64,000 nt of DNA from Chlorokybus atmophyticus (GCA_009103225.1 RHPI01002069.1:583378-647377); one strand, 5' to 3'. Numbered from the stretch's first letter, positions 5,872 through 52,257 are shown. Program-made: numbers and translations. Notes: generated by a model not told the origin, from the letters alone.

Positions 5872-7508
5872 CGCACTGCAGGCGGAGACGAAGCGGACTG
5901 TCGCTCTGCATGCTGAGCCGAAGCTTGCTAGCGTGGTGGTACACTGCAGGACGATCGTAGCCGTCAAGTGTCGGGTAATGCACGCCACGCGTACGTCTAC
6001 AAAAGCCGCCACATGTGCAATTGGCACTGTATTACACTGTTAAACAGCGTGTGGTGTAGACCTTGCAACATGCTGATGAGACCTACAGTGCGTGCTACTA
6101 TATAGGCTATTTATGCAAGCTGAGGCACATGCAAGTTGCATGCCACACAAGTTGTGACACAACTTCAAGAAACAATCATTGATGATTGCATGCAAGTTAT
6201 AAAACTTTAGTGCATGCAATTTTATGCTTGTCATTCATGCTTGTTGTGTACAATAGCCATTATTATTGCGTAGTATTATGCTCCGATGTATGTAGTTAAA
6301 TTTAATTGCTTGTGGTGTGCTGGCTTGGTTTTAAGTGCAAATGCATCCACATGGTTGCGCATGTGTGGCACAACCTATTCAATAAATGCGTTATTGCACG
6401 AGTATCATAACATAATATAAGAGTTGTTGAATAGCAAACACGCAACGAGGGCCGAATGCAAGCAACATGCATATGTGCATGCATGTAATACAACGTTATG
6501 TGAGTGTGATAGCTACACTACTGCTATTATATGAACATTCATTATTGCAATCGTAAAGATTGTGATATGAAACATCACATATTGCAATTGATCCGTGCAC
6601 ATGCTTATTGATACCGATGCCATGTAAGATGTAGAGGTAGAATTGGTTGCGCCTTATTTGTAACCGTTGCGATTATGTATGCCAATTATTGTAATTATGC
6701 ACGCACAACTTCTGTGCTATGATCATCTACCATGCACAAGTTGCCAACACATTGTGCACAATAGGTGGTATGTATCATTGAGGGTATTGCCATAAGCCCT
6801 TCAAGTTGATGTCATTGATTTTGAGCAGGTGAACAATCAACAAGGTCAACAACTGTCGATTAAAGTGTTACTGTTGAAGATACATAGCCACCAAAAGCAC
6901 GGTTCATAGCTGCGGCCTATACATTGATACCGAACAGCAAGCAACCTCAGTCCATTGGCATAACACGTAGCCATGGCCACCACTCAAGCCGAAAGCTGGA
7001 ACATGTACACCACAACCTTTAGCGGAAATACTCAACTACACACATATAACTTGTTCGTACATGGAGCAGGCGATGCCCTTAAAAAAATAAGTGATCAACA
7101 TCCCTATGGGAAACAGTGTGGGAGCTTAATTGTTCAATGAACTTTTGTACATGTTTGAGTTCGATCTCATCCTTATGTTGCTACAAGTTGTGTAGATTTA
7201 ATTGCTGCGTTTGCTAATAACATAGTGCGTTATGTTGATGTTGTCTTTTGTATGAATGTTCCCGATTCGCAACAAATCATGTATCAAGGAGACAACGTGT
7301 TTACAGAAGGTATGTGTCCGAATGATATGTTACAACTCACGTTGACACAGCAAGGTCCTGCGATGCCGTCTTGAGATTTGCAAGTCTTTCAGCATGCTAG
7401 CATAGGTTTGTGCACAACATCATATTTCAAGCAGTCGTTACCAGCGTTTGCAAACATACCGGTTCGCTGTGCACTACATCTCGAGTCAAACTTGAACAAG
7501 CAGGGCAA

Positions 7509-9220
7509 ACATGGTGTGGTGTGGACGCAGTGCATACGTTTTAGGCGGTTATGCACACTCAAGTCAGCCTTCTTAACAGCTATGGGCATGTTGATCAACG
7601 CATGCGCTCAGAAGGTCACAGTCTGCGCCAGTTACTCAAGCTCTTATAAGCGCGTTTGTTTAATTGCAATGAATTGTGGTATGGTTGGTCCGCACGCTTT
7701 ATGTATCATGCTATCCTTCGTGCAGCAAGAACATGAGGGGAGCGTGAAAACGCCCTTATATGGGTGTTTCAATAAACGCCTCCAATGCTTGGACATGTGC
7801 CAACCTGTATGTGGGCTGTTGCTACTGCACAGGCTTTTTTAATTGCAAAGGCGCACACGCACAAGCACACAACAAACGACACCCCTGCATGTATGACTCT
7901 TGCATTGCTGTTGACAAATTGCTCGGCCGCTTGCTCTTGCTCATGTCCTGCTGACTAGCTACTTGTGCACTTGCTCTGGCTCTTGCTCTGGCACTGCACT
8001 CTCGGGTACTTGCATGCTACTGCCTGCTACTAGCAAGCAATGCGACTCCCAAGTTGTGCCAGCGCGCGAACCCTAAACTTGGTTGAAAAGGCTCCACTGC
8101 CCAGTGGGTAACTGGCAGTAGCACGTTGCCCCTGTTTGGGACGTTGATAACTGTGGCGCTGCTCACACAGGTACGGCACTGTTGACTTGGTCGTGCTAGC
8201 TTGTGGGTGGTGCTGCTCTGGGGCCCAGCGCACTGCTTCTTTTATTGCTGCTCTTATTTGCAGCTCTTCGTGCTGTTTGCACGTCCAATTCTGACTTGGT
8301 TGTTTGCCTACCTTGCCTGCCGTTCATCACCTACTGTGTGCTCGTGTGTACAAAAGAATGTCGACGGAATCAACTGCATGCAATGCATGCTTTGCACATA
8401 CACACAGCATGCATGACATGCATCACACACGCATAGGCAACAACAGCACTCAGTTCAGCAATCGCCACCGGGCTACTTTATTACCTCCATCTACCTCTGT
8501 GTGCATTAACTTTGATGTCCTGCTACTGTATTTGCCTATACATCATAAATGACGTTTTGCCATCAATGGTTATGCCTTTTGTGAACAAGTACCTGCTGTA
8601 CTTTTATACAACAATGCAAATCCTTTATTAAAACTGCATGTGTAGCCACAATAACACCAATAAAGGGTGCCTCAAGGGAAGGTACGGGCCCTGTTCTCTA
8701 GTCACATCTTGCTTGCTTCACTAGTTACTTCTCTACCTGATTCTCTAGTTGTCTGTGGCTTCTCTGTTACATTTCGCTTGCTTTGTGCTTCATTCTCTAT
8801 GTGCTACACCTTGTAATTGGCGATCATTCAAGTAACATGCTACCTGTTGTGTATGACAACAAGCTGTGACTCCATGCAAAACCCGCAACCTGTGCAACAA
8901 CGGTACGTACTCGTAGCATAGCATGGCACAAATTACTGCAAATGCTCAAGCAGCTAGCATGCATGAGGAGGAGCATACGCCATGTATTAATGTGGTCCAT
9001 GTCATACGCGTAGATGGTATGCATGCAGACACAAAAGGGATGGGAAGCTCCATGCGTGTGCACTCGCTTGGCAGCGATCCCATAACTTGACATTGCAGAA
9101 CTGTACAGCAGCCAGCTTACTTTTGTAAACGAGCTAGACAAAAGCTAACCAACTCAGCATACCCTGTGGTCAAGCAATGTGACACTAAAGTATTGACTGC
9201 AGATCAGCATCCTGGCGAGC
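7509..9220. repeat. Left copy of a long direct repeat (partner 20135-22248); ends with the last ~11 codons and stop of SNU114
   Basis: Collinear, with roughly 90-95% identity by eye, from acatggtgtggtgtgg to gtattgactgcagatcagc[a/g]tcctggcgagc. Confidence 0.92.
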
Positions 9221-9229: not shown

Positions 9230-9580
9230 TCACAAGCTAGCTTGTGGGACTGCAATGGTAGTCAGTGCTTAGCTTAGCTACTTGGCCTGTTGCAGCTAGC
9301 TTGCGGGGCGACAGGCTAACGCCGGTAGCTTCAGTCAGTGTAGTGCTTAGCTTAGCTTCCTGGGCGGTAGCTACAGTCAGTAGTGCTTACCTCAGCTTGC
9401 GCGGTGGTAGCTACAGTAGTGCTTACTTCAGCTTCCGTGGCGGTGGCTACAGTCAGCAGTGCTTAGCATGGCTTGCGGGGCGGTAGCGCCAATAGTGCTT
9501 AGCTTAGCTTGCGGGATGGCGGGGGCGGGGGCGGAAGCTGCATTGGCATGTTACAGCTAGCTTGCGGTTGCCGGTGGCGG
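9230..9580. repeat. Imperfect ~35-40 bp tandem array
   Basis: Repeated gcttagcttagctt...gcggtggtagctacagtcagtagt units starting right after the left direct repeat. Confidence 0.65.
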
Positions 9581-9800
9581 TCAGTGTACTGCCATGAAGT
9601 GGTCAGCTGAGCAGCAGCTGGGTAGAACTGACACTATCAAGCTAGAGAAAGCCATTTGTGAAGCGGTTGAACTGCTGAAAGAGGGCAGCAGTGCTGCAAC
9701 CACCATGCAGGGAGGGGGCTGCCAAAGTGAGTAGCACATCCACTTACTATTGGTTGCCACACATGCTTTGCTTTATTAGTCCCACACAAGTTCTATTCAT

Positions 9801-10083
9801 CTGATCAGTTGCCCCCAGCTGCAAGCATGTGCACTGTGCTCTCCTTTCAGCTGATCAGCTGCCCCCAGCTGCAAGCATGTGCACTGTGCTCTCCTTTCAG
9901 CTGATCAGTTGCCCCCAGCTGCAAGCATGTGCACTGTGCTCTCCTTTCAGCCGATCAGTTGCCCCCAGTTGTAAGCATGTGCACTGTGCTCTCCATTCAG
10001 CTGATCAGTTGCCCCCAGCTGCAAGCATGTGCATTGTGCTCTCCTTTCAGCTGATCAGTTGCCCCCAGCTGCAAGCATGTGCA
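9801..10083. repeat. 50-bp tandem repeat, ~5.7 copies
   Basis: Unit ctgatcagttgcccccagctgcaagcatgtgcactgtgctctcctttcag at 9801, 9851, 9901, 9951, 10001, and partial at 10051. Confidence 0.97.
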
Positions 10084-10321
10084 GCCAAGGAACAATCTTA
10101 CATTCCATTGATAGGGCTCTCCTTTTCCTGCTTTCTTGCCTTGTTCATAACGCAGTGAACGTGTATAGCTGGTCACTTGGCTTTTCTTGTTGCCATTAAG
10201 AGGCTAGCAAGACACATTGCAGGCACTGATGTGCAGTCCGACTGCTCAGTCACTTTCAATCAAGCGCGGGATCTCTTCTGAGCAACACTCTTCACTCAAC
10301 TCTTCTTGTTGCCTTTGAGAG

Positions 10322-10350
10322 GTTGAGCTAGTATTGCAGTTCTAGCTCAG
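10322..10350. repeat. Left palindromic boundary motif (consensus TGAGCTAGTACTGCAGTACTAGCTCA)
   Basis: gttgagctagtattgcagttctagctcag matches the reverse complement of 17533-17561 at 26/29 positions. Confidence 0.85.
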
Positions 10351-10417
10351 CAATTGATATTGTATGAAGCCACTACAGCAACATTAACTTCATAAGCAAT
10401 GTCCTAAAAAGCAGAGC

Positions 10418-12140
10418 TTGATTGTTCAGTCGCACTTACTCGACCGCAAAAGCTCATTTGAGCAGCATGCAGCTCAGGTTGAAAAGGAACACTTAGGTGA
10501 GTTCACCGATTGCAACATAATGCTAAGCAAAGTACATTGCCAAGCATGTACGTCTAACTCTTGTGTTCATCTATCAGCCGTGCAGTACAGCAATATGACA
10601 TGCAACGAGCTAAGGGCGGAATTCAAAGCCAAGAAAATTTGGTTCCAATGCAATCTACTCAAGGCGTTGTTGTTGAAGACGCTGTGCATAGCTCTGCAAT
10701 TACCTGTTTAAGAGCCAGGCCCTAGACGCTATGCAAAAGCTGATCCTGCATCCGGAGTTGAGTAGCGCAAGCGGCCCGCCGGTGCCGTAGAGATCCCAGC
10801 GTGCGCAATGCATATACAATGAGTGATCTGCACTATACAAGTGGGACTCTGCTCTTGCTTTGATATACCAGTTTGTATTGCACAGAGAAAGTCGATGTGT
10901 CATGGAAGATTGCATGCGCGCCTGAAAAGTTTGTAGTGATTTCTGCACAGCGCATATCAGGGAACGGAAGATGCAGGAGGACCCAAAGTAAGCCATGTGG
11001 TTATTATCCCATGTGTACTGATACGAGACAAGTTATGCTTATCATGATGTATGATCAGTTCCTGGAAATGCGCGGAGGCAGACTGCACCAACAAAGATAT
11101 GAAGGTCGTTTCATATTCTACCAGCACTATTTGGAGAAGTGGAGCCAGCGATGTCCTCAGTAAGCGAATACTACAGCACTGCAATGTCTCAGTTTGTCTT
11201 ATGATGTACTTAATGACGCGTGTGCTCAGAGAACGAGAATGTGAAATCGACCAATGTGACAAGCTCACCGTGAGAATAGATCTGCCCAAGTGCAAAGCAC
11301 ACAAGAACCCAGCAAGACCATGCCATACTTGTAATGGGACAATTCGTGAGGGTAGGGCTGGCCGAAAGTGCTGGAATTGCACATTTACAAAGATGGCACA
11401 AAAACGGTTCCCCGGGTGAGTGCTATGCAGACAATGCATACTTTATACCATGCGATGGCAAGGTATTTACTGTGGATGCATTGGCAGAATGGGACCAGCA
11501 GACGCTGTGGAGCTGGTGCGTAGATTGAACAAAAGCAAAATGGCAGAAAAGGGCAGGAAGCGAACCAGACATGTCTCTGTACTCCCTTTTTAGGAGATGA
11601 TGCGGATGCATTTGATCAGCCGTGCTGTAGATGCTTTAAGAATTAAAGAATTAGACGTCTACCCGTGGTGCCCAGGAAGGTGTTGGGGTCCTGGGTGTGC
11701 TCGAACGAAGACATTAAGGAGCGAATGGTTGAGCTCTTTGGAGAATGGGATGTAAGCATATACGAGATAGCTTACAGATTGCGGATGTTATGTAGGCTGA
11801 TGAGTGGTACAGTACACATTAAGTGACATATACCATGACTGCAGGGCCTTATCAGAGATGACAATTATCAGGAGCTTTGGGTTGCAGATCATTTTCCTCC
11901 TTTGGATTCTTTCGACTTGAGTGACGAAGAGCGGCAGAAGATAGCATTTTCATACAGGAATGTCTGGCCATGCCCTGATGCTTTCAACAGTTGGAAGGGC
12001 GCGAGAGTGATTCCGCCCATACCATGGCAGAATTTCTCAAGTGGCTTCGCACCCCTTTTCGGACCCTAAAAAAGAAGCGCAAGAACTCTGTGAAAAAGGC
12101 AGATATGAATGCCGCAAAAGAGTTGCTAGCTGCAACTTGA
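10418..12140 (+). pseudogene. Disrupted intron-containing gene: SAP/HeH-like motif + C-x4-C...C-x2-H zinc-finger repeats + HNH (His-Me finger) endonuclease
   Basis: YSNMTCNELRAEFKAKKIWFQCNLLKALLLKTLC (~10580-10690); RCVMEDCMRA*KVCSDFCTAH and ECEIDQCDKLTVRIDLPKCKAH; last exon GLIRDDNYQELWVADHFPPLDSFDLSDEERQKIAFSYRNVWPCPDAFNSWKGARV (~11845-12010). The last exon fits the large-DNA-virus/phage HNH pattern W.IDH..P..SFDL.D.EQ....F.Y.NLQPL....N..KG. Contains in-frame stops and a frameshift. Confidence 0.65.
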
Positions 12141-12149
12141 ACTCGATGT

Positions 12150-15100
12150 TTGTTGTCCTAGTTAGCATACTCGGGTAGTGAGGAGATACCATGTTGTAGA
12201 AATCAAGCGCTAAGCAGGTAGCACAGTCTAATGTTAGGCATAACAAAATGTTTATCCAGAGGATACTATGGTGTACTTGTTGGTATTACAATGCTGATAT
12301 GTTGACTGCTATGTTGACATGCACTGTGTCACACACACTGCATATAACATCAACATACCACTTTAACGAAGCTGAACCAGAAGGCTGAGCATCTTACAAA
12401 AAGGTCTGACATAGAACACACACACATATGTACAAACAGCCAGCAACAAGCACTACCTACCCTGCAATTCATGCCTACTGCGTAAATGATATCATTGCTG
12501 CCAGGGGTTTGCAAATCTGGCAACCTTGCGGGATCTTGCAGCTGTCGCAGCCCCATACGTCCCAGGCTGCAATATCGTATCCTCCGGAGACCATGGCTTG
12601 CTCCCAATCAGGTGACGGCTTGTTGCCATCTTGTAAGTGAGTCGAGCAAAAGGTTGGCGGTGTATCACCCATTACAGATGCCCTCCGCACACATTCAGGA
12701 TGCAACGCTCGCGAGCAGTGTCCCACTTGACATCGAGTTTGTTCTCCAATTGCCAATGAAACGTTCAGGCCAATGTTGCAATCAGGCATGGCACAGCGGA
12801 ATTGGCATTTCTGCTTTGCAGTTGCAGTCAACTGCCGAGCAGGATGCGCTTTCCGTGCAGGGGTGTTATCTGCAGTGCCGTCCTTGAGAGTGTCTTCAAC
12901 ATCACCAATGGCCTGTAGCTGGTGCTGCGAGGGGATGATCACCTCATCATCTTCACAATCGCTTATTACGTCAGCTTTAAACAGCACAGCCAGGTTCCTT
13001 GCCATTTCCTAGTCGCGCAATAGCTGCAACTTTTCTGCTACAGCTTGCAACAAAACTTCTGCTTCTTCAGCTGCCAGGTCCTCGGTAGCAATAGCCACAG
13101 GCTCCGCCAGGCTTACTTCGCCAGCATCTGCTTCGTTCAACTCTGCAGCTCTATCAGCAACCTGCGCGACCTTGAGCGCGTTATACAGGGCCATCCATCT
13201 GTTTGAAGCAGCTGATACACACGCTTCTCCATAACTGTCCACTGCAAACAAGCAAATATATTTATTCAACCTACACTTGACAAATAACCATATATGGCAA
13301 AGGTGCACATGTCACTTACTGTCTCGAAATTCCTGCGAGTGTTTTGCCATCCAGTCCTTGATGATCTTCAAATTATCCGGAGCTGTGTCGATATTAGCAT
13401 TGCCATGGTCTTACCATTTTTGCAGCATGACAACATGCTGAACATTAGTGTGCTCGAGTCGAAGAAACAACTGCCGCAACAACAACTTTGCCTTGACAGA
13501 TCTAGACTAAAATATCAGTGATGCAGGTGCTGGTTCAATAACGGTTGGAATGCGTCTGCTCTCTTAATGTTTGCGCAAAACTTTTGCCTGAGACCGATAC
13601 GCAACTGGTACTGCAGTGCTAGCTTTTAAGACTTGTTGCAACACCGCAATTTGACATATACACATTACACCAAGCATCAGCTAGTACTGCAGTATTAGCT
13701 GATGAGTCGTTTCCTTGCTAATAACCTGTAACTCCAGGTATTGCTTGTAGCTGTACACTCTCTCTAAGATGGCATTGACACAGGCTGAGTTGTTAAGGTG
13801 TATACGCTGTAACCGCGGAAGACTCCTGCCAGGGCAAAGCTTCCAGCACCAGTCCCAAGATCAAGTATCCAGCGCTCTCGACCTTTAAGTTCGAGTAGAT
13901 AGTCTCGTCTCAAAGACATATCCAGGCGCTGTGTTGCACACACAGACTTGGCCCCGTTTTCATTCACAATCATGATTAGCTTGAGTTGATTCCTGAAAAG
14001 CTCATTTAATGCGGGATCCCGCAGCAACTCAGGCGCCTGCGTGCGCACTGTGATATCCCAGCTTCTACAGACCTCTTACATTTCGGCTGTTGTGCTGGAC
14101 TCGGCTTGGTCATTTTTGGCTGCTCCCAAATCGGTTGTTCCACAAGTATTTGATCATGTCTACAGTTGGCTCTGGATCTGCATATTGTGGAATAGGGAAG
14201 GCATGTAGGAATTCTGAAAGGTGGTCACCGTACCAAGGCATAAACATGCGAGAGGCATAAAAGCGCTTTAGATTTGTTAAAGCAAGCGATGCGTTGCCTT
14301 TTTCAAATAGACCAATGACCACCAACTCGCTGAAGAGTGCACCTTTAAAGAACTCCGGAAAAGCGCGATATTCTGCAAATACAACATTTTAGGCAAATGC
14401 CCGGTTGGCCTAGTACTGCAGTCCTAGCTACGTATACCGGAACTTACTGGCTTGTGCGTAACGGTAGCAAGTGTACTCTATAGCAAAGGTTCTGTGCTGC
14501 TTGAGCACTGCGACCACTTGGCCAACGTACTCCGCATTTGCAAAGGCCACCATGGTCCAAAACGGCAACATGCGGTTGAGCGACACTAAAGTTAATAGCT
14601 TTTCAAAGTCTTCACTGCATATACCGTGACCTAATTGAGATGTAGCGTCATCTACAAATGGAATATCGCAATAAACCAAGTAGAAGGGGAGGAGTACGCT
14701 TGGGCGGATGTCTGTCTAAAATTCTTTAACACCGCCTTGGCGCACAACAACGCGTTGCTTTGCGACTTGATGGCGTATATCCAGCTTGTCTTAAAGATGG
14801 CTGTGGCATGACATGTTGTAACTTCAGCTGTACAAGCACACGAACAGGAAGACAACACACCTTGGCATAATAATTTCTCCTTAGATCTTTTGGGACTTGT
14901 CAACTACTTCTTTTCCAAGCAGCTCGACATAGTCATCTTGCAGGACAAATGGCAGGTGAATGTTAACCAGGGTGCGGAAGTCAACACGAGACTTTTCAAG
15001 CTCTTCGATAAAATGTTTATCAACATTGAGAACTTTTTCAAACAAGGCTTCTTGCTGTTGAGCCAAGTTTGGGTAGTTCTGCGACAATCGCTGCTGGCAC

Positions 15101-17205
15101 TTCAAGTATAGGTATGACATCAGGTACTGAGGGCATAGCGTTACAAGTAGCATTGATTATAGCGACTTACTCGGCTTTTCCATAAGGCTCGCGAAGTGTA
15201 TAAGCGGCCAGATATCCCATAAATCTGCCCAATCTCAAAATCCTCTGAACATGAAGCTTGAATGGACCGGCGGGATGTAAATGGATCTTTTTGTGTTCGA
15301 CATCATCCACTATCTTTATGATCATATCTTTTTCTAACCTTCTAAAGTCATCGATTGTGGCAAAGCCAGCGGATTTTTTTGGATCATCAGCATCTCTTAA
15401 CACCGTAAACATTCTGTCAAACTGACTGTCGTCTAAAGGTAAATCGATGGCCAACCTGATAAGGCGCAACACATTGACTTATGTCGGACTTGGTACTTTT
15501 TGAACTGTCGACGACGATACATACTTTAGTGAGCGCTTGTGCATCTGACCCAACCCTGATATGTCTTTAGCAAAAATTTCGGCTATGTCCTCCGTGAACT
15601 TATTCAATAGCAACAGCCATCCTTCAACTACTTGCTTCCATGGACGATGCTCTGGCTTCTCAGTCAGTCTTTTACCCGATGCTGACGGGCTTGGTTTTCC
15701 GCGATTGAGCCACTAACTTCGCATGGTAGCAAGTACAGTCAATGCGGAAGAGGCTTTTTTTTCTTCTTCTTTTGCATTATGCACTCTTGCCAGCATCATG
15801 CAATCAAAGTCTGCTGGCTCTCCACTAATTACCTGTTATCACAACAAAGCATCAAATTAGATAGCATGTTGCTTATCGCTGCGAGCATGCTTGCGCAAGC
15901 TAGTACTGCAGGACTACCTTACCTCTGCATCTTCGTAGCGCCACTCTTCAGCACCTGGCTCTTCTTCTGCGAGGAGCTGCTTGGAAATACAGGAATGATT
16001 GCCACCAAGGACTTCCAAGACAATGTTGGGGTCGTTATAGTGAGCGTTGAAGTAAGCGTTGTCAACAGGTTGCATCCTGCCGCTTTCGTTTCGGTAAGCG
16101 TAAACCACCCATGGTTTGTGCGTAGTTGACCGGGATATTACAGACTTAAAGTGGACCATCTTTGCTTCATAGCGCCATTTTTCTAACAAGCGGACTTTAC
16201 GCTGGGGGCTGGCCAAGGTCATGCGTTGCACTGGCAGTTTGAAAAGCCTCGAGCCATTTAGAGCAACAAAGCGTACAGTTGGATTGTATTGAGCCGTCCG
16301 CACTGCATGGGGCAAGTTGTAAGATATGATTTGTGTTGAATGGATTATAATACGCAAGTTTCACAAAGTTTTCACCCTCAGTAGTCGTATTTGAAGCAGG
16401 TGTCTGGACAGATGCTTGCAGCGCTGTTGCTAATCCCTCTTTGGTCACCTGAGAGCGTCGCCTCTTTAGTGCAGGTAAGGGAGACAATGGCAGTGCGCAT
16501 TGTGCCTTTCTCTTCTCGCCTTCTGAGAAGCAGCATGCTACATGAGCAAACAAAGCATTATGAGCAGTGTAAAAGTATGTACCTTGCCGGTGCTTGTAAA
16601 ACTGTACGAAATCGGTAGGCTTTTTAGTTTCAAACAGCGTTTTGAGTATGCCATCGATAAGGGGTTTGAGAATTGGATGGTCTTTCAACATTTCTCCATT
16701 CTTGTCAGAAGAGGTGTGATAATAATGGCCTTTATCAATATTAGCCATTACTACATGACAGGCTGAATCAAGCAGATTGCCGGTTGGACCCATACTTGCT
16801 GTAGGCACGGTGAGAAGAAGGAGCGTCTTTTCCTTTTTTAACATGTCTATCAAGCGATACGCTTCTTTCTCAAGAGTAACCTGGAACTTTTGGGCTCCTA
16901 TGTAAATTATCGACCAGGGTTTGCCCCATCTCAGGTTGGGCGCAACCTTTTCATATGAGCCAATAAGGTCAAGGACACGTTGAGGTGACTGGTCTCTCTG
17001 CGATTGATAACAATATCCGGCCCTGCACATGGAATGACTATGAGAACAGCTTATGGGTAGCGTGCAGTGCAGTTATTAGCTTACATGTTGTCGATGATGA
17101 TGGTTGCGAAGCGGTTGGTTTTGCTTGCGAAGGTTGTTAGAGTCCGCCAACCTGAGGGCCCTCTGATTCAATTTTGCTCTGGTTGAACTGTGCTTCCTCA
17201 GACAT
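12150..17205 (-). pseudogene. Disrupted multi-exon gene: ParB-like domain + beta-class N4C/N6A DNA methyltransferase + PHD finger(s)
   Basis: ParB-like FKLPVQRMTLASPQRKVR...LEVLGGNH (15995-16006)...LARVHN. Motif IV LVYCDIPF (14656-14667) precedes motif I WILDLGTGAGSFALAGVFRGY (13839-13868), which is the beta-class order. PHD CAMPDC...CQVGHCSRALHPEC...FCSTH (12637-12795). Introns 15833-15922 and 14373-14447 splice in frame. Nine or more in-frame stops and two or more frameshifts. Confidence 0.75.
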
Positions 17206-17402
17206 GGCTACAACTTGGCTATCTGACTCATGTAGTGGAGCAGGGCTGTTTTAAAAGAACTACATTTAGTTTAAGGAACAAGAAATTAGTAGACATATAG
17301 TAAACTGGCAAACATTAACATTCTACTTACCGGTAGTTAAATCTCGTCAAGTTTTTTAATTGAGTGGACTGTACACAATTTGAAGTTATTTGTGGTAAAG
17401 CT

Positions 17403-17561
17403 GAGCTAGTATTGCTGTGCTAGCTACGTTGTTCATGTCACCACTGAGGTAAAGTTACGACAGCTACTACAGCTACTACTGCAATACTAGCTCAGACAAC
17501 ATACATACATACGACAACTATCATGAGCCCGTCTGAGCTAGTACTGCTGTACTAGCTCAAC
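17403..17561. repeat. Cluster of three copies of the palindromic motif (right boundary)
   Basis: 17403-17425, 17471-17494 and 17533-17561 (ctgagctagtactgctgtactagctcaac), upstream of the methyltransferase gene start. Confidence 0.85.
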
Positions 17562-17584
17562 AGTTGCTGCTGTACTATGCACAA

Positions 17585-17690
17585 ACGTTAGCACCTTAGC
17601 GCAGAACCGGGTGGAGGGGTGGTCGTTGTCCCCGTAGGCTGTGGAGATTTACGACCCTTGCCCCGGGACGTGCTGCACAAAGCAAAGTAG
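17585..17690. repeat. Diverged direct copy of 17842-17958 lacking the left hairpin arm
   Basis: Shared cgttagcacct.agcgcagaaccgg..ggaggggtggt...ccgtagg...ttacgacccttgcc...tgctgca. Confidence 0.65.
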
Positions 17691-17898
17691 CTAGTCAATG
17701 CATTCTATCAATCTACTTCCTGTGACCTTTAGTAAGTTTCTGATGAACATCTGTTTGCACACATGCATGCGGAACTACAAGACGGACAGCATGGGTAACG
17801 TGCAGTGCAGTTGTTGACTTACATGTTGTACCGTGTACAAGCGTTAGCACCTGAGCGCAGAACCGGACGGAGGGGTGGTTTCCGTAGGTCGTTAAGGC

Positions 17899-17958
17899 TT
17901 GCAGCACTACATCTCAAGGCAAGGGTTACGACCCTTGCCTTGAGATGTAGTGCTGCAA
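17899..17958. repeat. Perfect 28-bp inverted repeat with 4-nt TACG loop
   Basis: ttgcagcactacatctcaaggcaagggt-tacg-acccttgccttgagatgtagtgctgcaa. Confidence 0.97.
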
Positions 17959-17959
17959 A

Positions 17960-19234
17960 AACCGAAGCGTTTGACCAATGCATCCATCGATATTGCATTA
18001 GGTACTGCATTTCACAGACCTTGGCCGGCATGTATGTGACGCTGATGTCCTGATCCTCAGAATCTCCAGGCTTGCGCAGGTCAACCGTCACGTAGTTCTG
18101 ATACGGCAGCACACGCGCATGTGCATATGTGACATGGCTCTGATGGTTGAAGCACATCGCACACTGTGAACACACCTTTGACTGAGAGAAAGCAATTGTG
18201 GTCCGGAGGTAGCTGGCCACATGCACACCGGTCTCCCACTGGAGCTCTTCCGTCAGGAAGTGTGCATTTCGGATGCACTTGATGATCCGCCCCATGTCGC
18301 AGGCCGACAGGCCTTGGCCGTTGTTGCACTGCATGAATGCCACTGCAAGAGCATGCTCCGAGCCATACCACCTGGATTCCGATGCGTGCGAAGGGACGCC
18401 TCCACTTCCATGTTGGCGTGCCACAGGTTTCTCAGGCACACGCACACAACGAAAGCCCTCGTTCACTTCCTCCTCCTCCTGTTGCTGCTGTGCGTGTGTC
18501 TCCTGGAGGAATCCTTCAGCATCAAGCATGTGCGCATCCTAAATCGAACTCCCCGGTTCAACAACACCCGCATCGTACTGTAATGGACGCTGGCCGACAT
18601 ACGGCTTGATTTGCTTGCACACCCTGCTGCTAACAATGTGCATGTAGATTGAGCTGCGTGTGGCGAAGCGCATGTAGTAATACGGACAAAGGACTCACAT
18701 ATCTCACTACTGACGTCGGCACAGGTGTCGCCAATATAACCTGCATGATATCCAGCAACACGCACCGCCGCCGCCGCCGCCGCCGCCACCGCCATCGCTA
18801 CCCTTGCATGCCAGAGGCGGGAAACTTGGCCGCCATTCACTGGCTCCGTCGTACCATTACTATGGTACGATTGAGCCATTGCACGTCCAGGGTGAGCCTC
18901 TGCATGAATATCATAATTGAACCGTTTCAATGGTACGAGGATGCCTTTGCTAAAAGATACCATTAAAATGGTACCTTTGAACAGTGGCAATGGCAGTTTG
19001 TACCATTGACAAGTGCTGGCAATGCCAATCCCTGCGCATGAAAACACCATTGATTGCTCCGCCAAGCTATGCCCTTACATGGCGGTGGTGCCGAGGGTAT
19101 GTGGCGTTTGGTGGATCATTGGCGGCGCTGCCAGGGGCGTAGTGGGCATTGTGGCCGAGGTCCGGGATGAAGCCCATGTTTGCACAGGGCGGGCAAGGTG
19201 CCGGTGGGGTGTCCTTGGTGTCAAACCCCACCAT
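17960..19234 (-). pseudogene. N-terminal fragment of a Plavaka/CACTA-like transposase, truncated at the hairpin
   Basis: Cys/His-rich first exon (MVGFDTK...CPPC...RHHRH, GTAAGG donor), then WYGSEHALAVAFMQCNNGQGLSACDMGRIIKCIRNAHFLTEELQWETGVHVASYL...VDLRKPGDSEDQDISVTYMP. This resembles Plavaka N-termini from memory only. In-frame TAG near 18540; no catalytic core present. Confidence 0.42.
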
Positions 19235-22248: not shown

Positions 22249-25200
22249 GAGTTCGAGCAGCATCGGATCATCAAAGAACTTGTTAATGCTAACGTCTTCA
22301 CTCATGCCCTGCACAGCAGATAGGCATACATTTGTAAGTGGCAAACACGCAGGAAGGATGCAGCGCAGCTCTGCAAGCTCGCATGGCAAACCTTTCGACG
22401 CCTTGTCTTGACCATGAACTCGCGAGCTAGGTGCTGAACAGGCGCTGGCTCCAAAGGCCTCATCACGATAGACTGCGCAGTTGCACAATATAGCACTCAG
22501 TCTTCACTGACAGACCCCAATGACAACATACACTGGTGGTACAATCAGTGCTGTTACCTTATCCAGAGGGTCTCCAGGCACAATCTGCCAGTGGTCAAAC
22601 ACAGACACGCAGAACGCTTGACCTTGCGTGTGATACCTCAAGTCCGTTTCAAAACCGAAGGACTCAACCGTTGGGATGAAAGCCTGCCACACAATGCCTT
22701 AGCGAATGGTCCTTTGCTTTGCGCTCTACTACTACCAGCTGGGCTGCATACCTTCACAATATAAATGGGGGTTCCAGGCTTCGGCACATCTGCTGTTACA
22801 TGCCCTCTCCTCCTCGACAGCACCGTGTAGATTGCCGACATGCAGTCTGCAGGCGTTTGCACCTGTGCAAGCGCGTGTCAGCCAATGTGCAAGAGCTCAC
22901 AGACGCCAGCTGTCAGTCATCTAGGCTTTTTAATTGCGTCCTGCTCAATAGGTCCATAATTAAACGCGGGTGGGGTGGAGGGTGGGGGGTCGGGGGTCTG
23001 ACCTCGACGTAGTAAACAGGCTCCATCAAGCGTGGCGTAGCCATCAGGAAAGCTGAGTAAGCCACACGACGGGCGGTGGGAATGATCTGTCCGCCACCCC
23101 TGTGCAGAGGCTCAGGAGCGATGGTCGCATCAAGGATCTTGAACTTGACATTGCGAATGGGTTCATCACACAAGGGTCCTTCTCGTGTGCCCCACTGGAA
23201 CCCTTGCACAATAGAATCCTTGACAGCTCCAAGCAAGGACTTGTCAACCTCTGAAGGAAGAGTATCATCTAGCAGAATGTTGGGGCCTTGCTTGTCTGGG
23301 CCAAACGCCCATATGGACCTTGCAGCAAGCAGATCCCAATCATATCGCGTCTGGAAGAAGTCACCCAGCTTCTTGCGAGGCCAATCGATGCTGACAGCAC
23401 CATTTTCGACATCTTCTGCTAAGCCTTTCTCCAGTGGCTCTGCAATCTAACAGAGGAAATGGACCGTAAGGAATGCTCACACATGATGCAATGTAGGATT
23501 GATACCAAACAAGAGCGTCTACCATCGTCAGCTTGTTTTTCTTGTTTGGCGTCTCCGCAAAGCATTTCAGCGAAGACGTTTCGACCACAGTCTCGCAGAA
23601 AGAGACAACTGGGTCAGCAACTTTGATCTCAACTTCAGCATAAAGATCTCGCAGGTCCTTCATCACACTGTCCAAAAAAATCTCTCCAGTGCCCATGATG
23701 GTGTGCTCTCCAGACTCCTCCACCTTGGTCACTGCCAACGGGTAACTCTTATTGATCTTCCGCAGCCCCTCCACCATCTTTGGCAATTCAGATGGATTGA
23801 GTGGCTCGGTTGCAATCTTCACCACCTGCATAACAGCAAATAGTCTTAAACTACCAGGCACTGGTCAGTGTATTGCACCCGTTCAACACTACAGTGCCCA
23901 ACCACAGCAAAGCCATACCGATGCAGTGTTAAACTTCAATGGCCTGAAGATGTAAACTTCCTCATCCAAGTGTTCATCAGTCAGTGTGGCTGTCTTGGTG
24001 ATTGAAGCATCTACACCTTCAATGAGCACCCAGGTGCCCGCGGTTGCTTGTTTCAATGGAATTCGGTACCTGCAATGTACAGTGCAATGTTATAGCATTG
24101 GGGGCAGCTGACACGCATGTCACAAATGGTAAGCGCCAACTCAGTGAACATGTAAAGCCTTACCGAGCTTCGTATGCCCATATGTTGGAGACTGTTTTGA
24201 CTGCCATGTCTTCTTCATCATCAGGTGAGTATCCCTAAAGACCAAGAGATAAACGTTGAGTTCGTTCAACTGGGGCACTGCACATACATGCGGCACTTTC
24301 AGTTACACAACTGACACTCACCTCTCCAAGTACCCTCACAGTCATGCCAGGGCGCAATGTGCCGCTCATCACTCGCCCCAAGGCATCAAACGCACTGCAG
24401 TCTGACTTTGGATACAACTTGGTGATGTACACCTGCACCATGCGACCGGTCGCAGCCTGTTCACCCAAGCCTTTTTGCACGTGAGGTTTCAGATATCAGC
24501 ATCTTACCATCAATGGTCCATTCGCATTGCATAACGCCATTGACCCCGCGATTTCACTGTCTTGAGGTCCTGAATAGATGTGCTCCACCTGTAAATGTGT
24601 AGTACAAGCTTGCATCAGGACCCTGGCAAGGCATGTAAGAACTCGATATGCAGTGCACCTTACCTTGGCTGGTGCAGCATCAATGGCAGATGGAATGTGC
24701 TTCACAAGCATATCAGTGAAGCCGGTGGCACTTCCAAACACACGCGTGCAGGCAGCCTTCAGCAAAGGCTTAACGTCCAGGTGATACTCTGCAGCAAGAC
24801 CAACTCTCAGCATGCGACCTCAGCGGGGTGACGACGACCTAACCTGCAAGAGGCGTACCTGATGACTTCAAGTAAACCCCGAACTCTTCGAGTGTCATTT
24901 CCACATTTTTCTGATGCTCTCCAATGACCTGGCTGTACAACTTATACAGGGGCTCTAGGATAAACTGAACAAAGGTGCGCTTTGACTCGGCATCTGCCGG
25001 CTTCTTCTTGAAGGCTGTACGCCAAGACTAATGTCAGGTTCAAATGTGAAAACTCAAAGGACATACTGATATGGACTAGAGTAGACTGTTGCATGAAGAA
25101 AGGGGAGGGATGTCGGGTCAACCAAGACATGAGGCTGCAAGGGACATGCATCTGACTGGTGGTGGGAGGAGGGGGTTGAGCGCTCTTACTTCTGGTGCTT

Positions 25201-30413: not shown

Positions 30414-31323
30414 AGTACAGATTGCTGCATTGCCAGCTCAAGTGGGATCCAGATTGGCTGCTGCATAGCCAACAGTTGCAATCCGAATGAGCGTGGGTGT
30501 GTGCACATGTGGCTTGGCCTTGCCGTGAAGCACCAGAAGTTTGTATACGCCACGCAAGACGCGCTGCTGTACTCAAATCCACAACAATCAAGAGCAGCCA
30601 GAATCAAAGCTGTGGTTCGTGCCAACCAGCTGACGCAATGCAATTGGCAAAGCCTCCAACTTCCACTGAACTGCACCATGATGTTACCTTGTATTGATGA
30701 ACACATGCTACCTGAGCTGGCTTGCCTATCTATGCCGGTGGGCAGTTGTGTAGTGCCAGTAACATAAGAGGTAGGGTTGCAGGAAAAGTGTTACTGTTTG
30801 TACACATTTATGTGGTCTGTGCTGCGTGGAATGCAACCACAGTTGCATGCTGATCATCAAGCGGTCAATGTTGCACTGCCTACTGCCCCTGCTTGCACAT
30901 ATGTAGCAGAACTTGGAAAACTTCTTGTTCACATCTCTAGAACAACGTCTATTCACCACTTACTGCTTATCATATGCAAGCCCTCAGCCACTGTACCCAA
31001 GCTGCCTGCTGCATAGGGTATGAGTCATATTGCACACAGCTGCTTGCATACCTAGAGTTGTTATGGTGTTGGTTGTTGTGGTGGAGTTTGTCGCGATGGT
31101 TGCTTTGCTGAGTGGAATCACTGTCTCCACTTATGCATGGCTGGATCAAGCTAATGAGCGTGCAGTCCACTCAATACCTAAATAACTGCAGCCAACTTAT
31201 GCTCTCAAACCGCTCACAAACACGCACCACCACCCTTATTCCCAAGCAGTAAGCCAATCACTGTACTACAGATACCCATGTCACTTAATGTAATCTAAAC
31301 CTAACAGCAAGCAGCGTGCAACA

Positions 31324-34300
31324 CTATCTCAAATCAGTCTCAACCGCAGGCTCCTCTTCCCAATCGAATGTCAGCTTGTAGATCTGGTCGTAGTGCTCAA
31401 CAAAGTGCACATCCAGATCTGTCTTCAGGTAGTCTGGAAGTTCTTCGTAATCCCTCTGATTACCAGATGGGAAAATGAGTGTTTTGACTCCACTGCGCCG
31501 AGCCGCAACAGTCTTCTCGCGCACTCCGCCAATAGGCAGCACTGCCCCTGTCAAAGTCACCTCGCCCGTCATTGCCAGATTGGGCCGCACCGGCTTGCCG
31601 AGCGCGAGCGACAGGATGGAGGTGATCATCGTGCAGCCGGCACTCGGTCCGTCCTTGGGCGTGGCGCCGGCGGGAACGTGCATGTGCAATGTGTTGGTGC
31701 TGAAAAAATTGGCTGCTGGAAGCGCAGGGCCGGGAGCTGCAGCTGTAGCGAACTCTTGCGTGGCCCCTGCAAGTGCAAGTGTCATCCCCAAAAAACCCCG
31801 ACTCTGGTCGCACAACAGAAAACACCAGCAGACTAGCTGCTCTACAATGAGCATTGAGGGCTGGACACAGCACTGCTCAACCAATGCATGCAGTGTTTAT
31901 GCAAAAACAACCACAGCAAGACCACCATGTGCCACACGATTTAGCGCAATACCTGCTGGTGCTCCTGCAGGTTGCGCTTGCAGAAGCGTGCGCTGTGCCG
32001 TTTGTTGCTGGACAATACGGGTGTAGTACTGTCTGGCGACCGTGTATGCGATGGTCGCGCTTTCCTTCATGACATCGCCAAGCTGGCCGGTGGTCCTGAG
32101 GCTGCCGCGGCCCTCGGCTTTGTCTTCAACGGTGGTTTCCACGTACAGCGTCATTCCGCCCATGGAGGTCCAGGCCAGGCCCATCACCACGCCGACAGGC
32201 GTCTGCTTGTAGAACTTCTCGCTCGTAAATGTGGGACTGCCCACATACTGCTGCAGATCCGACTCCTCGATTGCGACTAGAGTTGCCTCCTTGGCGTCAC
32301 CGGAGCGAACGAGTTTCAAGGCAACCTTGCGGTAGATCCTCTCGAGCTGCTTTGACAGGTTTCTGACACCCGCTTCTCGGCAGTACTCATCAATTAACCT
32401 CTTCAAAGCACTCTCTGTTACAACGGCCTTGTCCTTCTCAACTCCAGATCGCTCCTTGGCTTGTGGCTCTAGGTAGTCCCGTGCAATGGCGAGCTTTTCT
32501 TCTGCAATATAGCCAGCTAACCTAATCACCTGAGAAACAGCAAGGCACGACAGGAATATCAGCAAATGGTGTCAACTACTCGCAAATGCTAAGGCCATGA
32601 TGCTAAGCAAGGCAAAAACTAAGTCAGGCATGTTCTTCAAAAATGGTTACCTCCATGCGATCAAGAAGGGGCCCAGGGATTGCTTCAACAACATTTGCCG
32701 TGCAAATGAACAAGACCTTGGACAAGTCTACGGGGACATCCAGATAATGATCTAGGAAAGAGGCGTTCTGTTCGGGGTCCAGCAGCTCGAGCAGTGCACT
32801 CGCTGGATCTCCCTGTTCCGGCAATGGTGTTAACACTGAGCTCCACCATCTGGTTGCAGAGGCATGGACGTGCAGCATATATATACATAAAAATGCATAC
32901 CTGGTAACCCCTCCCAAGCTTGTCAATCTCATCAATCATAACAACTGGATTGCTGGTGCCAATGGCCTTCAGAGCCTGCACCAACTTGCCGGGCATTGCA
33001 CCAACGTACGTTCGTCGATGACCCTGTCAAACACATACCAACATCAGGACTCAGATTGGTTGCAGTGGCCAATCTACAAAACACAGAGATGCTGCACAAA
33101 ACAACAACCATGCATACCTTGATCTCTGCAACATCACTGAGCCCACCAACTGAAAACCGGTAAAACTTGCGATCCAGTGCACGCGCAATAGACTTCCCTA
33201 TACTGGTCTTGCCAACACCAGGTGGGCCACTCAAACAGATAATCTTGCCCTGCAGTGCACACCGAGTTAGTTAAATGTGACTTCCGTTCTCCGCAAGAAA
33301 TAACCCCTCCAAAGTGATGCGTGTTCAACAGGCTCTGACGTATGTGGGTGCCATACCTGTGTATTGCCGCGCAAGTGGCCCACGGCAATGAATTCAAGAA
33401 TGCGCTCCTTTACATCGCTGAGGCCATAATGGTCTTCATCAAGCACCTGCAATTGCACACACACAGTCAGAGGATGCCACAGGGCGAAAGAAGCATCGCA
33501 ATCGCCGCGTGTTTACACCTTCTGTGCGTGAACGAGGTCGTAGTTCTCGGGGGTAAACTTGCCCCAAGGCAAGGCTGTCAACCAGTCCAAGTAATTGCGC
33601 GTCACATTGAACTCGCTGGAAGTTCCTTCAAGGCCTGAAAGCTTCTGCAGCTCCTCCTCGATCACTTTGACAACCTCCTCGGAGGCGTCGCCCCTGAAAG
33701 ACTCAAGCCTCTCCCGGAACTTGTCGACCAGAGCTGTCTTATCGTCCCTTTCCATACCAAGCTCCTGTGGCACAACACCTGTCAGCACATACTCAGGTAA
33801 AGATAACATCTGGAATGTATTTGTTTCAGCTTGGTTACCTTCTTAATTGACTTCAACTGCTCCATCAGAAAGAAGCGCCGCTGGTCGCCAGTAATCTTCT
33901 CCTCCACTTTTCGGCCAACTTCTGCCTGCAACCGGACAATCTCGACCTCTTTTTTCAACAAAAGAAGGGTCTTGACGAGGCGATCAGGCACCTGCGCATG
34001 CAACACGGAGTAAGCCTACATGACCATGCAACAAATACATGTCAACAAGTCTGTTAAGTGTTGCTTGCATAAATGTTAGCCGATACATCGGCAGTACCTC
34101 GCGAGTCTCCAAAATCTCTTGAAGTGCGTTGCCGTCGGCTGTGGTAAGTGTTGGGATGAAGTCTGCGACATGCGAGGGGTTCTCAAAGTTGAAGTCGCCC
34201 ATCACGCTGAAGTAGTGCGTGAGGTGCTCCTTGTAGAGCGGGTTCATTCTGATCAAGTCCCTAAGAGTAGAGATAATCTCAACTCGCGTGGCCTACACAC

Positions 34301-36309: not shown

Positions 36310-40958
<4,649 letters not shown>

Positions 40959-41686: not shown

Positions 41687-43587
41687 TCATCTCGACAGCG
41701 GCTGCAGCTTTCTCCTCTTGTATCTGATGACACAGGGTGGTTTTGGGCCAACCACCATAGACTCATAGTCTGGCTCGGGTAGGGGTGAGACGAGCTCGAG
41801 CTCAAAGTTCCTCAGTATAACGCTCCAGATGGTCTTAATCTGCATGTAGGCGAAGTTTTCTCCCATGCATCCGTGTCGGCCACCTCCGAATCCGATATAG
41901 GCGAAGGCTCCAGCCTTCTTGTCCTCCTCGCGGCCTTCCGTGAAGCGGTCAGGGTCGTAGGCGTCGGGGTTGGTGTAGACGTGCGGGAGGCGGTGTGCGA
42001 AGGCGGGGGACGTTGCCACAATCGTGCCGGCGGGGATGGAGTAGCTCCTGCCCTCCGCGGTGGTGACATTGAAGGGATTGTGCGTGTACCTCAGCAGCAT
42101 GATGAGAGGGGGGTAGAGCCTGACCACCTCTTTCACGGCGCGGTGGAGGCAGTCCATCTTGCTGAGCACGTCGTAGTCCAACACATCCCCGTGGTCTCGC
42201 ATGACGCGGCGCTGCTCCTCCACAATAGCGGGGAGGTACTTGTCCCCGGCGGCGAGGAGTAAGAGTCCCGTCCACGTGGACGTGATGGCGCTGGTGTGCT
42301 GGCCGGCAAACAGCGTGGCAATAAGGAGACCCGTAATCTCTTCTTCATTAGTGGCGCGTCCGTCCTTGTAGCGGGCGTCGATGTAAGCTTGTAGGATATC
42401 AGGTTCAGATACTCCCGAGGCTCGCCTGGCTTGTATGACCTTCTTGAAGAGTCTGCCAAGCTCAGCACGCGCGCGGTCACGACGCCGATGCGCGGGGATG
42501 GGCAGATAGGGAGCGAGCACGCTGATGGGGAGCATGCCGAGGTCGAGGTCGTGGAACAGAGCAGACACCTGCTCAAACATGTTCTCGCGCACCTCACGAC
42601 CAAGAAGACAACGGCTCGCCGTCAAGATGATCAGGTGGCTCAGCTCGTCCTTCAGGTCCACCTCGCCCTCGTCCGCCCACTTGCTGAAAAAGGCCTGTTT
42701 CAAGCAGCAGTTGGTTGCTATAGAGTAACACACATGCGCACGTGTTACAAGTGCGGCACAAGAATACGAAGTCACCTGAACACACAAGCACGCCCCCAGC
42801 GCACACGCGTGCGCGCGCACACGCATATGCGCACAAAAGCAGCAAATCAAAGAGTGCCATGCTTAAAGAACACTGGTCTTCGACAATGCAATATACCTGA
42901 GCTTCTGTGACCATCATGCCAACATAGCTGTACAGCCTGCCCGTGCGCAGCGCGTCCGAGAAGAAACGTATCTGCTCCCCGCGCACCACGTGATCCACGT
43001 CAAACACAACCCCTGGTCCAAAAGTGGGCACACTGTAGCCGTACACCTCCTTCTGGCTGAGCTCCATGTCAGGCGCCTGTGCAAGTGCAAACACAAAGTG
43101 CTCAAGTAAGCTCTGTCTGTCTCTTTTTGTTTTGTTACAGGTTTCGTTCTGTTCTACAGTTTTCTCTTTATCCTGCTGTTCTGTCCGCATGAGTCGTGCA
43201 AATCTGCATGCTCCTGGCTGCCTTGATTGCAACGAACCGTGATCAACAAATATGAGCACCATGCAAGGATAATGGTGCTTGTACCTTGAAGAAATGGGGG
43301 CTGACGGAGGGGCCGATAAGGAAGGTGATGCGCTTGTGCAAGACAAAGACAGAGAACACCTCGCCGTAGCGGTCGTAGCCCTCGCGCATGAGCTTCATAG
43401 GGCCAGCGATGAACTTCAGCACGCCGCCGACGACAGGCACGCCATGCAGCACAGGCGGCGTAGGCAGGGCGCCCTTGCCGCCTGACCTACGGAGCAGCAA
43501 GCCCACCGCTGCCAGTGCCAGCGCACCCGCAACCAACACGTACGCCAAGTTCCCTGCTAGCAGACCCTCTCCCGCAGCGCCCGCCAT
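41687..43587 (-). CDS. CYP51: Sterol (obtusifoliol) 14-alpha-demethylase, 3 coding exons
   Basis: N-terminal TM; SQKEVYGYSVPTFGPGVVFDVD; LFAGQHTSAIT; EVVRLYPP; heme motif FGGGRHGCMGE. Confidence 0.97.
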
Positions 43588-46341: not shown

Positions 46342-46342
46342 T

Positions 46343-46356
46343 TGGTATCCAGGAGC
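46343..46356 (+). promoter_or_regulatory. Primer-binding site, tRNA-iMet-like
   Basis: tggtatccaggagc, 1 nt after the LTR; variant of canonical TGGTATCAGAGC. Confidence 0.75.
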
Positions 46357-52123: not shown

Positions 52124-52257
52124 ACTGTGGGCTTGGTTTTATGACAGACTGGCAGTGCAGTTTCATTACCACCCTGTCATTTCCTGCTATCTCACTGGTT
52201 ACAATTACTCGAAATCAAGCCTGATCAACTTGAGTTCAACGAGGACGTTGAAAACCT

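Follow-up and report, generated by a model that had tools for sequence, protein, structure and literature searches.

A GC-poor island in Chlorokybus atmophyticus with eight copies of a palindrome, a phage-type HNH nuclease domain and a large orphan gene

Analysis of a 64,000-nucleotide stretch of Chlorokybus atmophyticus DNA (GCA_009103225.1, RHPI01002069.1:583378-647377; hereafter the window) identified a compositional island of about 7.3 kb that holds two convergent genes and eight copies of a 22-bp palindrome. The island is a real and discrete unit, since the GC content falls to 42–47% between ~10.2 and 17.6 kb, compared with 54–59% immediately outside on both sides (600-nt windows), and since the palindromes are confined to it, with the outermost copies standing at its edges. 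On the evidence of sequence comparison, the plus-strand gene ends in a genuine phage-type HNH nuclease domain of prokaryotic-virus ancestry. The minus-strand gene is an orphan at the sequence level, for which a ParB-methyltransferase-reader architecture is plausible from its motif order and size. We tentatively favour, at a little under an even chance, the reading that the island is a foreign or mobile-element-derived accessory module, either captured or non-autonomous, which settled between ordinary host genes.

The HNH domain was recovered by several independent comparisons. In tblastn searches against phage genomes the last coding exon of the plus-strand gene gave matches at E=6e-7, 2e-3 and 1e-2, and weaker matches carried the annotation endonuclease VII or HNH endonuclease. 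A profile built from seven phage homologues, run with filters off against the 1,701 stop-free segments of the window, retrieved the exon at E=3.9e-12 (43 bits), with the runner-up at 0.67, and a 120-sequence profile retrieved it at E=6.8e-11, with the runner-up window segment at 0.1. The similarity is confined to a core of ~50 residues, in which all eight family-invariant columns are kept (N254, W259, D262, H263, P266, N286, N295 and K298 in the numbering of the phage homologue L024), so that the catalytic D-H ... N ... N(/H) residues of the beta-beta-alpha-metal motif are present. These data bear out the HNH nuclease that the original prediction had placed on the plus strand. The family contains at least 493 proteins, nearly all of them phage, prophage or bacterial, and lacks a precomputed Pfam domain; of nine members that were aligned, seven matched phrog_1035, 'endonuclease VII', down to 1.4e-29, and in annotated phages the gene adjoins that of the terminase large subunit. 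No relative was detected among PDB sequences with the HNH profile, and in IMG/VR the exon showed no close relatives and nothing past phage HNH proteins. The upstream plus-strand exons (SAP-like and Cys-rich) showed no relatives in domain, profile or phage-ORF (open reading frame) comparisons. Splicing of a candidate 93-nt intron just before the HNH core lengthens the profile alignment by 20 positions for a gain of only 1.5 bits, which is suggestive of a real intron but short of proof.

The palindrome has the consensus AGCTAGTACTGCAGTACTAGCT. With up to three mismatches exactly eight copies were found in the window, where none was expected, and all of them lie in the island. Raising the tolerance to six mismatches still returned eight copies, all within 10326–17557, and near-perfect half-sites fell inside 10.3–17.6 kb in 12 of 12 cases. 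The copies occupy non-coding positions only. When the 16 half-sites (AGCTAGTACTG) were folded together, all 11 positions carried 0.8–2.0 bits and the neighbouring positions almost none, a pattern that fits the site of a dimeric sequence-specific binder, or a hairpin. Hairpin potential is strong at the three-palindrome array 17404..17557 (z=-4.2). Homology between copies is limited to a 22–26-bp core with unrelated flanks, which favours binding sites over segmental or transposable element (TE) copies. An origin from a miniature inverted-repeat transposable element, a longer repeat or a segmental duplicate was rejected, since the flanks share no homology, and a genome-wide introner was unsupported within the window, where no copies were found in introns of other genes.

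The original prediction had described a cassette bounded by inverted copies of a 29-bp palindrome. Both arms are real (10322–10350 and 17533–17561, 29 nt, 26/29 or 90% complementary), but six further copies lie between them and the right-hand copy belongs to a 476-bp block that is absent from an adjacent duplicate. To call the copies inverted has no meaning: the motif is its own reverse complement, so that the orientation carries no information, and the end copies can equally be aligned as direct repeats, with 80% identity across 41 nt. The motif is specific to the locus, but with internal as well as terminal copies it is not simply a boundary marker. The right-hand end, 17030–17990, is a local tandem duplication in which 17770–17990 is a contiguous copy of both flanks of the block 17092–17567; the duplicate also holds, at 17899–17958, an inverted repeat whose 28-nt arms match perfectly around a loop of 4 nt. 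In IMG/VR the palindrome gave one match only, a chance one within a coding region, and in metagenome contigs it gave 22 single matches, unclustered and mostly from one AT-rich marine population; the island genes had no relatives there.

Both genes appear to be interrupted by spliceosomal introns. Of the eight internal piece ends of the minus-strand gene, three have a strong GTRAG donor no more than 20 nt away (p=0.003 under random placement), a coincidence that supports such introns. Each apparent stop or frameshift could be bridged by a GT-AG intron, with the TAG between pieces m8 and m9 usable as an acceptor AG. The arrangement as two convergent, intron-containing genes thus agrees with the original prediction, whereas the claim that their 3' ends nearly abut at ~12.1 kb does not: the stops, at 12067–12069 (plus) and 12475–12477 (minus), are ~400 bp apart.

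The minus-strand gene would encode a product in which a ParB-like box (LEVLGGNHSCISKQLL) is followed by YCDIPF, by a glycine loop (WILDLGTGAGSFALAG) and by a Cys/His-rich C-terminus. Its sub-threshold matches all lean toward the families predicted for these pieces. The ParB-like exon matched the ParB-like family of PHROG at E=0.26 and, by tblastn, the mycobacteriophage 'ParB-like' gp1 at E=0.6; the DIPF exon matched the DNA methyltransferase (MTase) family of PHROG at E=0.23; and the motif-I exon matched the NCBIfam CpaM MTase at E=0.07, with 'class I SAM-dependent methyltransferase' (SAM, S-adenosylmethionine) in six of ten weak plasmid matches (E 1–10). A gp1-family profile placed the ParB-like exon first of the 1,701 window segments (E=0.006, 27 residues), a circular result since the family was picked for its prior match; gp1 itself had no Pfam match. 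The C-terminal piece gave Pfam matches below cut-off to EsV_1_7_cys (E=6e-4, 20 bits, cut-off 25), zf-HC5HC2H (E=0.01, 16.5 bits, cut-off 29.1) and PHD_NSD (E=0.02, 15.4 bits, cut-off 23.9), and an EsV-1-7-like C-x4-C...C-x2-H pattern was not enriched over shuffles in either gene. The sequence LDLGTGAGS, downstream of DIPF, corresponds to motif I of N6_N4_Mtase, although a glycine loop is not diagnostic by itself; it is also the only part that a custom ParB-MTase profile aligned, opposite ivlDlFgGSGst in the phage family.

Among the phage proteins related to the HNH domain, several (P0023, P0036, P0039 and P0051) are fused to the radical-SAM enzyme QueE (7-carboxy-7-deazaguanine synthase), and the mycobacteriophage gene gp1 (L224), the weak match of the minus-strand gene, adjoins a queuine tRNA-ribosyltransferase-like gene. 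Distant relatives of both island genes thus have ties to phage genes for 7-deazaguanine DNA modification, a hint that the chemistry of the island need not be methylation.

If the island is an accessory module of this kind, the palindromes would be cis-acting sites for a dimeric DNA-binding protein that the island itself encodes, most plausibly the ParB-like N-terminal part of the ~1100–1200-aa minus-strand product. This protein would bind the element's own DNA and possibly mark it chemically, by means of a SAM-dependent domain that it putatively contains. As for the HNH gene, it would be another accessory gene or a hitch-hiking nuclease of phage ancestry, which perhaps nicks or cuts DNA for maintenance or spread of the element. 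The three-palindrome array at the 5' end of the minus-strand gene is a good fit to the description of inverted-repeat arrays reported beside a ParB-domain gene in Plavaka elements.

Several results weigh against the accessory-module reading. In the minus-strand gene, neither a ParB domain nor any methyltransferase has significant support. Pfam gave no match for the ParB or MTase pieces, NCBIfam and PADLOC gave nothing significant for the gene, none of the three returned N6_N4_Mtase at E<=1-5, and six of its pieces had no match among PDB sequences. Two custom ParB_N+N6_N4_Mtase profiles of 17 and 161 sequences, based on gp03 of the Verrucomicrobia phage P8625 and proteins related to it, scored single exons and their ordered concatenation at or below 0 bits (-2 to -6 for the concatenation). 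Membership at profile level therefore fails for N6_N4_Mtase, Pfam ParB_N and the phage ParB-MTase family, and a failure of profile searches to support the MTase fold is among the outcomes that the original prediction had named as refuting its own reading; the ParB-MTase-PHD and SAP-like domains that it proposed were not significant at any threshold. As for the motifs, the ParB-like stretch that matches gp1 covers 27–40 aa and its GGNHS box is without the Arg of the GxxR or 'G-H-R' box, and the sole candidate for motif IV of N6_N4_Mtase, (D/N/S)-P-P-(Y/F/W), is D-I-P-F at ~14.68 kb. Neither the 277-aa N-terminal ORF nor the motif-I exon had a match in a word-indexed protein search, the motif-I exon had no close relatives in IMG/VR, and the DIPF exon had no tblastn match in phages or plasmids. 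When 1.84 billion representative proteins were searched exhaustively by phmmer with the motif-I exon, there were two matches, both repeat-protein artefacts, indicating that the gene is not close to any deposited algal ParB-MTase. Single-sequence AlphaFold2 models were unusable, with pLDDT (predicted local distance difference test) values of 39 for the ParB-like exon and 37 for the N-terminal 277 aa. None of the features of a bounded transposon was seen: no transposase was found among the tested flanking ORFs, no target-site duplication (TSD), nor any terminal inverted repeat (TIR) other than the palindrome, was detected at the island, and the window holds no second copy or paralogues of the island ORF pieces. 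In addition, neither relatives of the locus nor palindrome clusters were found in viral or metagenome contigs. Of the discrete mobile module originally proposed, the discreteness is confirmed by composition and by the confinement of the palindromes, and the mobility is unproven.

The island could also consist of two ordinary lineage-specific host genes, one of them with an anciently acquired HNH domain, that are convergent by chance in an AT-richer region; the palindromes would then be transcription factor sites, or hairpins in introns or the 5' untranslated region that regulate the large gene. We regard this explanation as unlikely, though as a serious contender. Spliceosomal introns in both genes, housekeeping flanks with no transposase and the occurrence of a single copy in the window agree with it, as does the position of seven of the eight palindromes within or upstream of one gene, which would suit a gene-specific regulatory motif. 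However, the drop in GC relative to neighbouring host genes is sharp, the nuclease domain is of phage type, and the three tested exons are without homologues in very large protein sets, which is unusual for a conserved host gene; a 22-bp perfect palindrome repeated eight times, four introns included, is moreover atypical of eukaryotic enhancers. The low GC and the viral-type HNH domain would be accounted for by a remnant of an endogenous giant virus (e.g. phaeovirus-like), or by a virophage or polinton-like insertion, in which HNH and MTase genes are common cargo and short palindromes are possible regulatory or termination signals. The sub-threshold EsV-1-7 match at the C-terminus of the minus-strand gene points the same way, and giant-virus insertions are widespread in brown algae (PMC12993054). 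This origin seems rather improbable to us, since IMG/VR yielded no matches for the genes and the palindrome beyond phage HNH proteins, no viral hallmark genes were found in the window, a viral origin of recent date is hard to reconcile with several introns, and the island measures 7.3 kb only.

The original prediction suggested a restriction-modification (R-M)-like or addiction module, in which the minus-strand gene methylates DNA (N4-methylcytosine, 4mC, or N6-methyladenine, 6mA) and the HNH nuclease cuts unmarked DNA, for self-protection or enforced retention. A real nuclease gene does adjoin a gene with MTase-like motifs, the HNH family can neighbour ParB-N6_N4 MTases in phages, its relative P0014 is named 'restriction endonuclease' by its source, and eukaryotic amino-MTases are often derived from R-M systems (PMC4738411). 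Yet of the linked gene pair of a type II-like R-M system only the nuclease is confirmed: the key component, the MTase, is unsupported by every profile test. The HNH domain is of the endonuclease VII or terminase-associated type, not that of a characterised restriction enzyme. A nuclear genome-wide R-M system would need millions of sites protected, and the restriction of the palindrome to the island indicates that it is not a genome-wide restriction target. Nothing points to a shared specificity, or to a nuclease that spares modified DNA, and we regard the R-M-like reading as very unlikely. Similarly low is the probability we assign to a decayed pseudogene pair, in which the ORF breaks would be inactivating mutations and the palindromes small insertions that disrupted coding sequence. 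Pieces m8 and m9 do share a frame with one TAG between them, m5 and m6 share a frame with 14 codons and a palindrome between them, the m2–m3 frame is almost open through a proposed 500-nt intron, and m1 and m2 overlap in two frames as if by a frameshift. Against this stand the strong GTAAG donors at piece ends; long neutral decay would also hardly have left ORF pieces as long as 291 codons, or the invariant residues of the HNH exon intact. Since a GT-AG intron could span each of the breaks, the dead copy of the original prediction is possible but not shown.

Table 1. Features of the island and their positions, counted from the first nucleotide of the window.
Feature	Position	Strand	Description
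Compositional island	10200..17600	no strand	GC in 600-nt windows; holds both genes and all palindromes
Palindrome copy 1	10326..10347	no strand	2 mismatches to AGCTAGTACTGCAGTACTAGCT; upstream of the plus-strand gene; left arm of the original prediction (10322-10350)
Plus-strand multi-exon gene	10388..12069	+	candidate donors 10497, 11160, 11416, 11752; acceptors 10577, 11593, 11844; stop 12067-12069; 5' end and early exons uncertain
Candidate 93-nt GT-AG intron (GTAAGC...CTGCAG)	11752..11844	+	immediately before the HNH core
Last coding exon, HNH / His-Me finger domain, phage endonuclease VII family (phrog_1035 type)	11845..12066	+	tblastn, profiles, invariant residues
Minus-strand multi-exon gene	12475..17030	-	~1100-1200 codons in nine stop-free pieces; first ATG 17030, stop 12475-12477
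Nine pieces of the minus-strand gene (m1-m9)	17072-16200, 16360-15917, 15478-15170, 15156-14884, 14715-14431, 14388-14113, 14075-13767, 13311-13012, 13008-12478	-	stop-free
C-terminal Cys/His-rich piece	12478..13008	-	EsV-1-7 Cys-rich and PHD-like matches below cut-off
Palindrome copies 2 and 3	13603..13624, 13679..13700	no strand	76-bp spacing; putative intron between minus-strand pieces 7 and 8
Motif-I piece, 'WILDLGTGAGSFALAG'	13767..14075	-	WILDLGTGAGS; SAM-binding glycine loop, motif I-like
Palindrome copy 4	14408..14429	no strand	middle of a candidate 75-nt intron (donor GTAAGT 14447, acceptor TTTGCAG ending 14373)
DIPF piece, 'YCDIPF'	14431..14715	-	possibly a degenerate DPPY-like motif IV, with Ile instead of the first Pro
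Palindrome copy 5	15898..15919	no strand	starts 3 nt past a candidate donor, gagGTAAGG, at 15922
ParB-like piece, 'LEVLGGNHSCISKQLL' box	15917..16360	-	weak ParB/Srx-like resemblance; LEVLGGNHS; conserved Arg lacking
476-bp block	17092..17567	no strand	carries the three-palindrome array; missing from the adjacent duplicate 17770-17990; flanked by TGTTGT/TGCTGT
Three-palindrome array	17404..17425, 17471..17492, 17536..17557	no strand	spacings 67 and 65 bp; directly upstream of the first ATG of the minus-strand gene (17030)

The remainder of the window is ordinary eukaryotic nuclear DNA, with a Ty3/gypsy chromovirus, cytochrome P450, TPR/PPR-like and hydrolase genes, and EF-G/EFL1-like and Lon protease exons. 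The surroundings of the island are gene-rich host DNA, as indicated by the minus-strand host genes at 22900–23900, 31300–32600 and 41700–42850 (EF-G/EFL1-like GTPase exons, Lon protease C-terminal exons and cytochrome P450). Two tandem-repeat arrays adjoin the island on the left, at 9323–9515 (40/76-bp units) and 9796–10083 (a 50-bp unit repeated 5.8 times with 94% identity), and a 31-nt direct repeat at 10173/10292 runs up to the first palindrome; these left-hand repeats (9323–10083 and 10173/10292) could be subterminal repeats of an element, or just minisatellites. Further GC-poor stretches (39–45% GC) with no recognisable genes are found at 6000–9000 and 44000–46000, the latter adjoining a long terminal repeat (LTR) of the chromovirus. 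This complete-looking element (45829–52797) has LTRs at 45829–46341 and 52270–52797 that are 100% identical save for a 15-bp length difference, a gag ORF at 47216–48391 and an unbroken 1242-aa pol at 48395–52123 (protease, reverse transcriptase, RNase H, integrase and chromodomain), and is probably a very recent insertion. Additionally, a perfect (TC)434 microsatellite of 868 bp occupies 37044–37911, with extreme GC/AT skew there.

Linkage of ParB-MTase and HNH genes does occur in phages. In the Verrucomicrobia phage P8625 (L029:604-5346) a ParB_N+N6_N4_Mtase gene, gp03, precedes the terminase and the HNH homologue gp07 by three genes, so that the pair flanks the gene of the terminase large subunit, and in the viral contig L041 (4465-6354) a gene of the same type is followed, 40 bp on, by a phrog_1035-type HNH gene. 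These two cases indicate that the pair is found in phage packaging modules, recurrently but infrequently: it was present in only ~2 of the ~21 phage loci examined. This linkage is in the spirit of the original prediction. R-M systems and the ParB-terminase loci of phages have been repeated sources of amino-MTases for eukaryotes, in which these enzymes are often fusions with chromatin readers (Iyer et al., PMC4738411). Both island genes could be traceable to phage packaging modules. An all-against-all comparison of the island ORF pieces with 1,545 ORFs of such loci gave a match for the HNH exon alone. The boldest version of this origin would make the island a eukaryotic self-marking selfish element, with a ParB-like clamp on its own parS-like palindromes, fused to a divergent amino-MTase and a Cys-rich chromatin reader, and an HNH nuclease that cuts DNA without the mark or the element, that is, an R-M-like drive or addiction system in chromatin whose two genes came from one phage ParB-MTase/HNH packaging module and gained introns later. 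We consider this scenario highly improbable.

If the minus-strand gene is a ParB-guided DNA-modifying enzyme, the island would add an HNH partner and clear candidate cis sites to a barely characterised class of algal transposon accessory genes, whose products are proposed to bind their own element and mark it epigenetically, and the 22-bp palindrome would offer a directly testable protein-DNA pair. The phage terminase-associated HNH domain, as the catalytic exon of an intron-containing eukaryotic gene, is independently of this a clean case of domain transfer from virus to eukaryote. If the MTase reading is wrong, there remains a compact unexplained island whose largest gene is relative-less in ~1.8 billion representative proteins.

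Among known systems, bacterial parS/ParB resembles the island in having multiple perfect-palindrome sites around the gene of a ParB-like protein, but the island site has 22 bp, compared with 16 bp, its context is a eukaryotic nucleus, and its ParB domain is unproven and without the GxxR Arg. The likeness to phage ParB-Tls (ParB-terminase) loci with ParB_N+N6_N4_Mtase fusions, from which several eukaryotic amino-MTase clades stem (PMC4738411), is one of gene content, by analogy only, with a ParB-MTase and an HNH gene per module (P8625; adjacent in L041), whereas the minus-strand gene of the island scores at or below 0 bits against profiles of this family. The phrog_1035 proteins, such as P8625 gp07 and Aeromonas phage 4_D05 gp41, share with the island exon a core of ~50 residues at 40–50% identity, with all invariants kept and the common pattern W-NY-W-DH-P-FDL-RN-P-N-KG. 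Unlike them, the island copy forms the final exon of a eukaryotic gene that has introns and no terminase neighbour, the N-terminal Cys-rich repeats are not detectably kept, and HIDH has become VADH.

The closest parallels come from brown, red and green algal transposons, in which ParB-like and amino-MTase accessory genes, and inverted-repeat arrays beside ParB-domain genes, have been reported (PMC12477816; bioRxiv 10.1101/2025.02.11.637652), and these reports make the earlier statement that no named element has such a layout outdated. The Ectocarpus Sola1-1_Ec32, a 21.5-kb Sola1 element, carries a 1104-aa ParB-like and N4C/N6A-MTase accessory gene on the strand opposite to the transposase (PMC12477816). 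The island resembles its published description in having a large eukaryotic gene (~1100 aa) in which a ParB-like motif is followed by amino-MTase-like ones, all of prokaryote type, within a discrete TE-like unit, and the Sola1 protein has likewise been proposed to bind and mark its own element. The two differ in that the ParB and MTase domains of the island are below significance, in that transposase, TIRs and second copies were not seen, and in the convergent HNH partner. In the Plavaka elements of Bostrychia and Chondrus, PAG2 combines an N6A methylase with SET, PAG3 combines a ParB N-terminal domain with a 2-oxoglutarate (2OG) oxygenase, and tandem inverted-repeat arrays lie beside PAG3 (bioRxiv 10.1101/2025.02.11.637652). 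The island similarly has an inverted-repeat array immediately beside the gene with the ParB-like box (three 22-bp palindromes with 65–67-bp spacing), and the self-binding, self-modifying logic of PAG2/PAG3 is that proposed for the island. Unlike in Plavaka, the partner domain is a putative MTase in the same polypeptide and not a 2OG oxygenase, palindromes are also intronic, no DDE transposase accompanies them, and an HNH gene is present. Algal mobile elements that combine inverted-repeat arrays with prokaryote-derived accessory genes for ParB and DNA-modifying proteins are thus a kind already described; what would be new, if the membership of the island is confirmed, is that the partner is a convergent HNH gene of phage type, that the palindromes extend into introns and that the large gene has diverged to an extreme degree.

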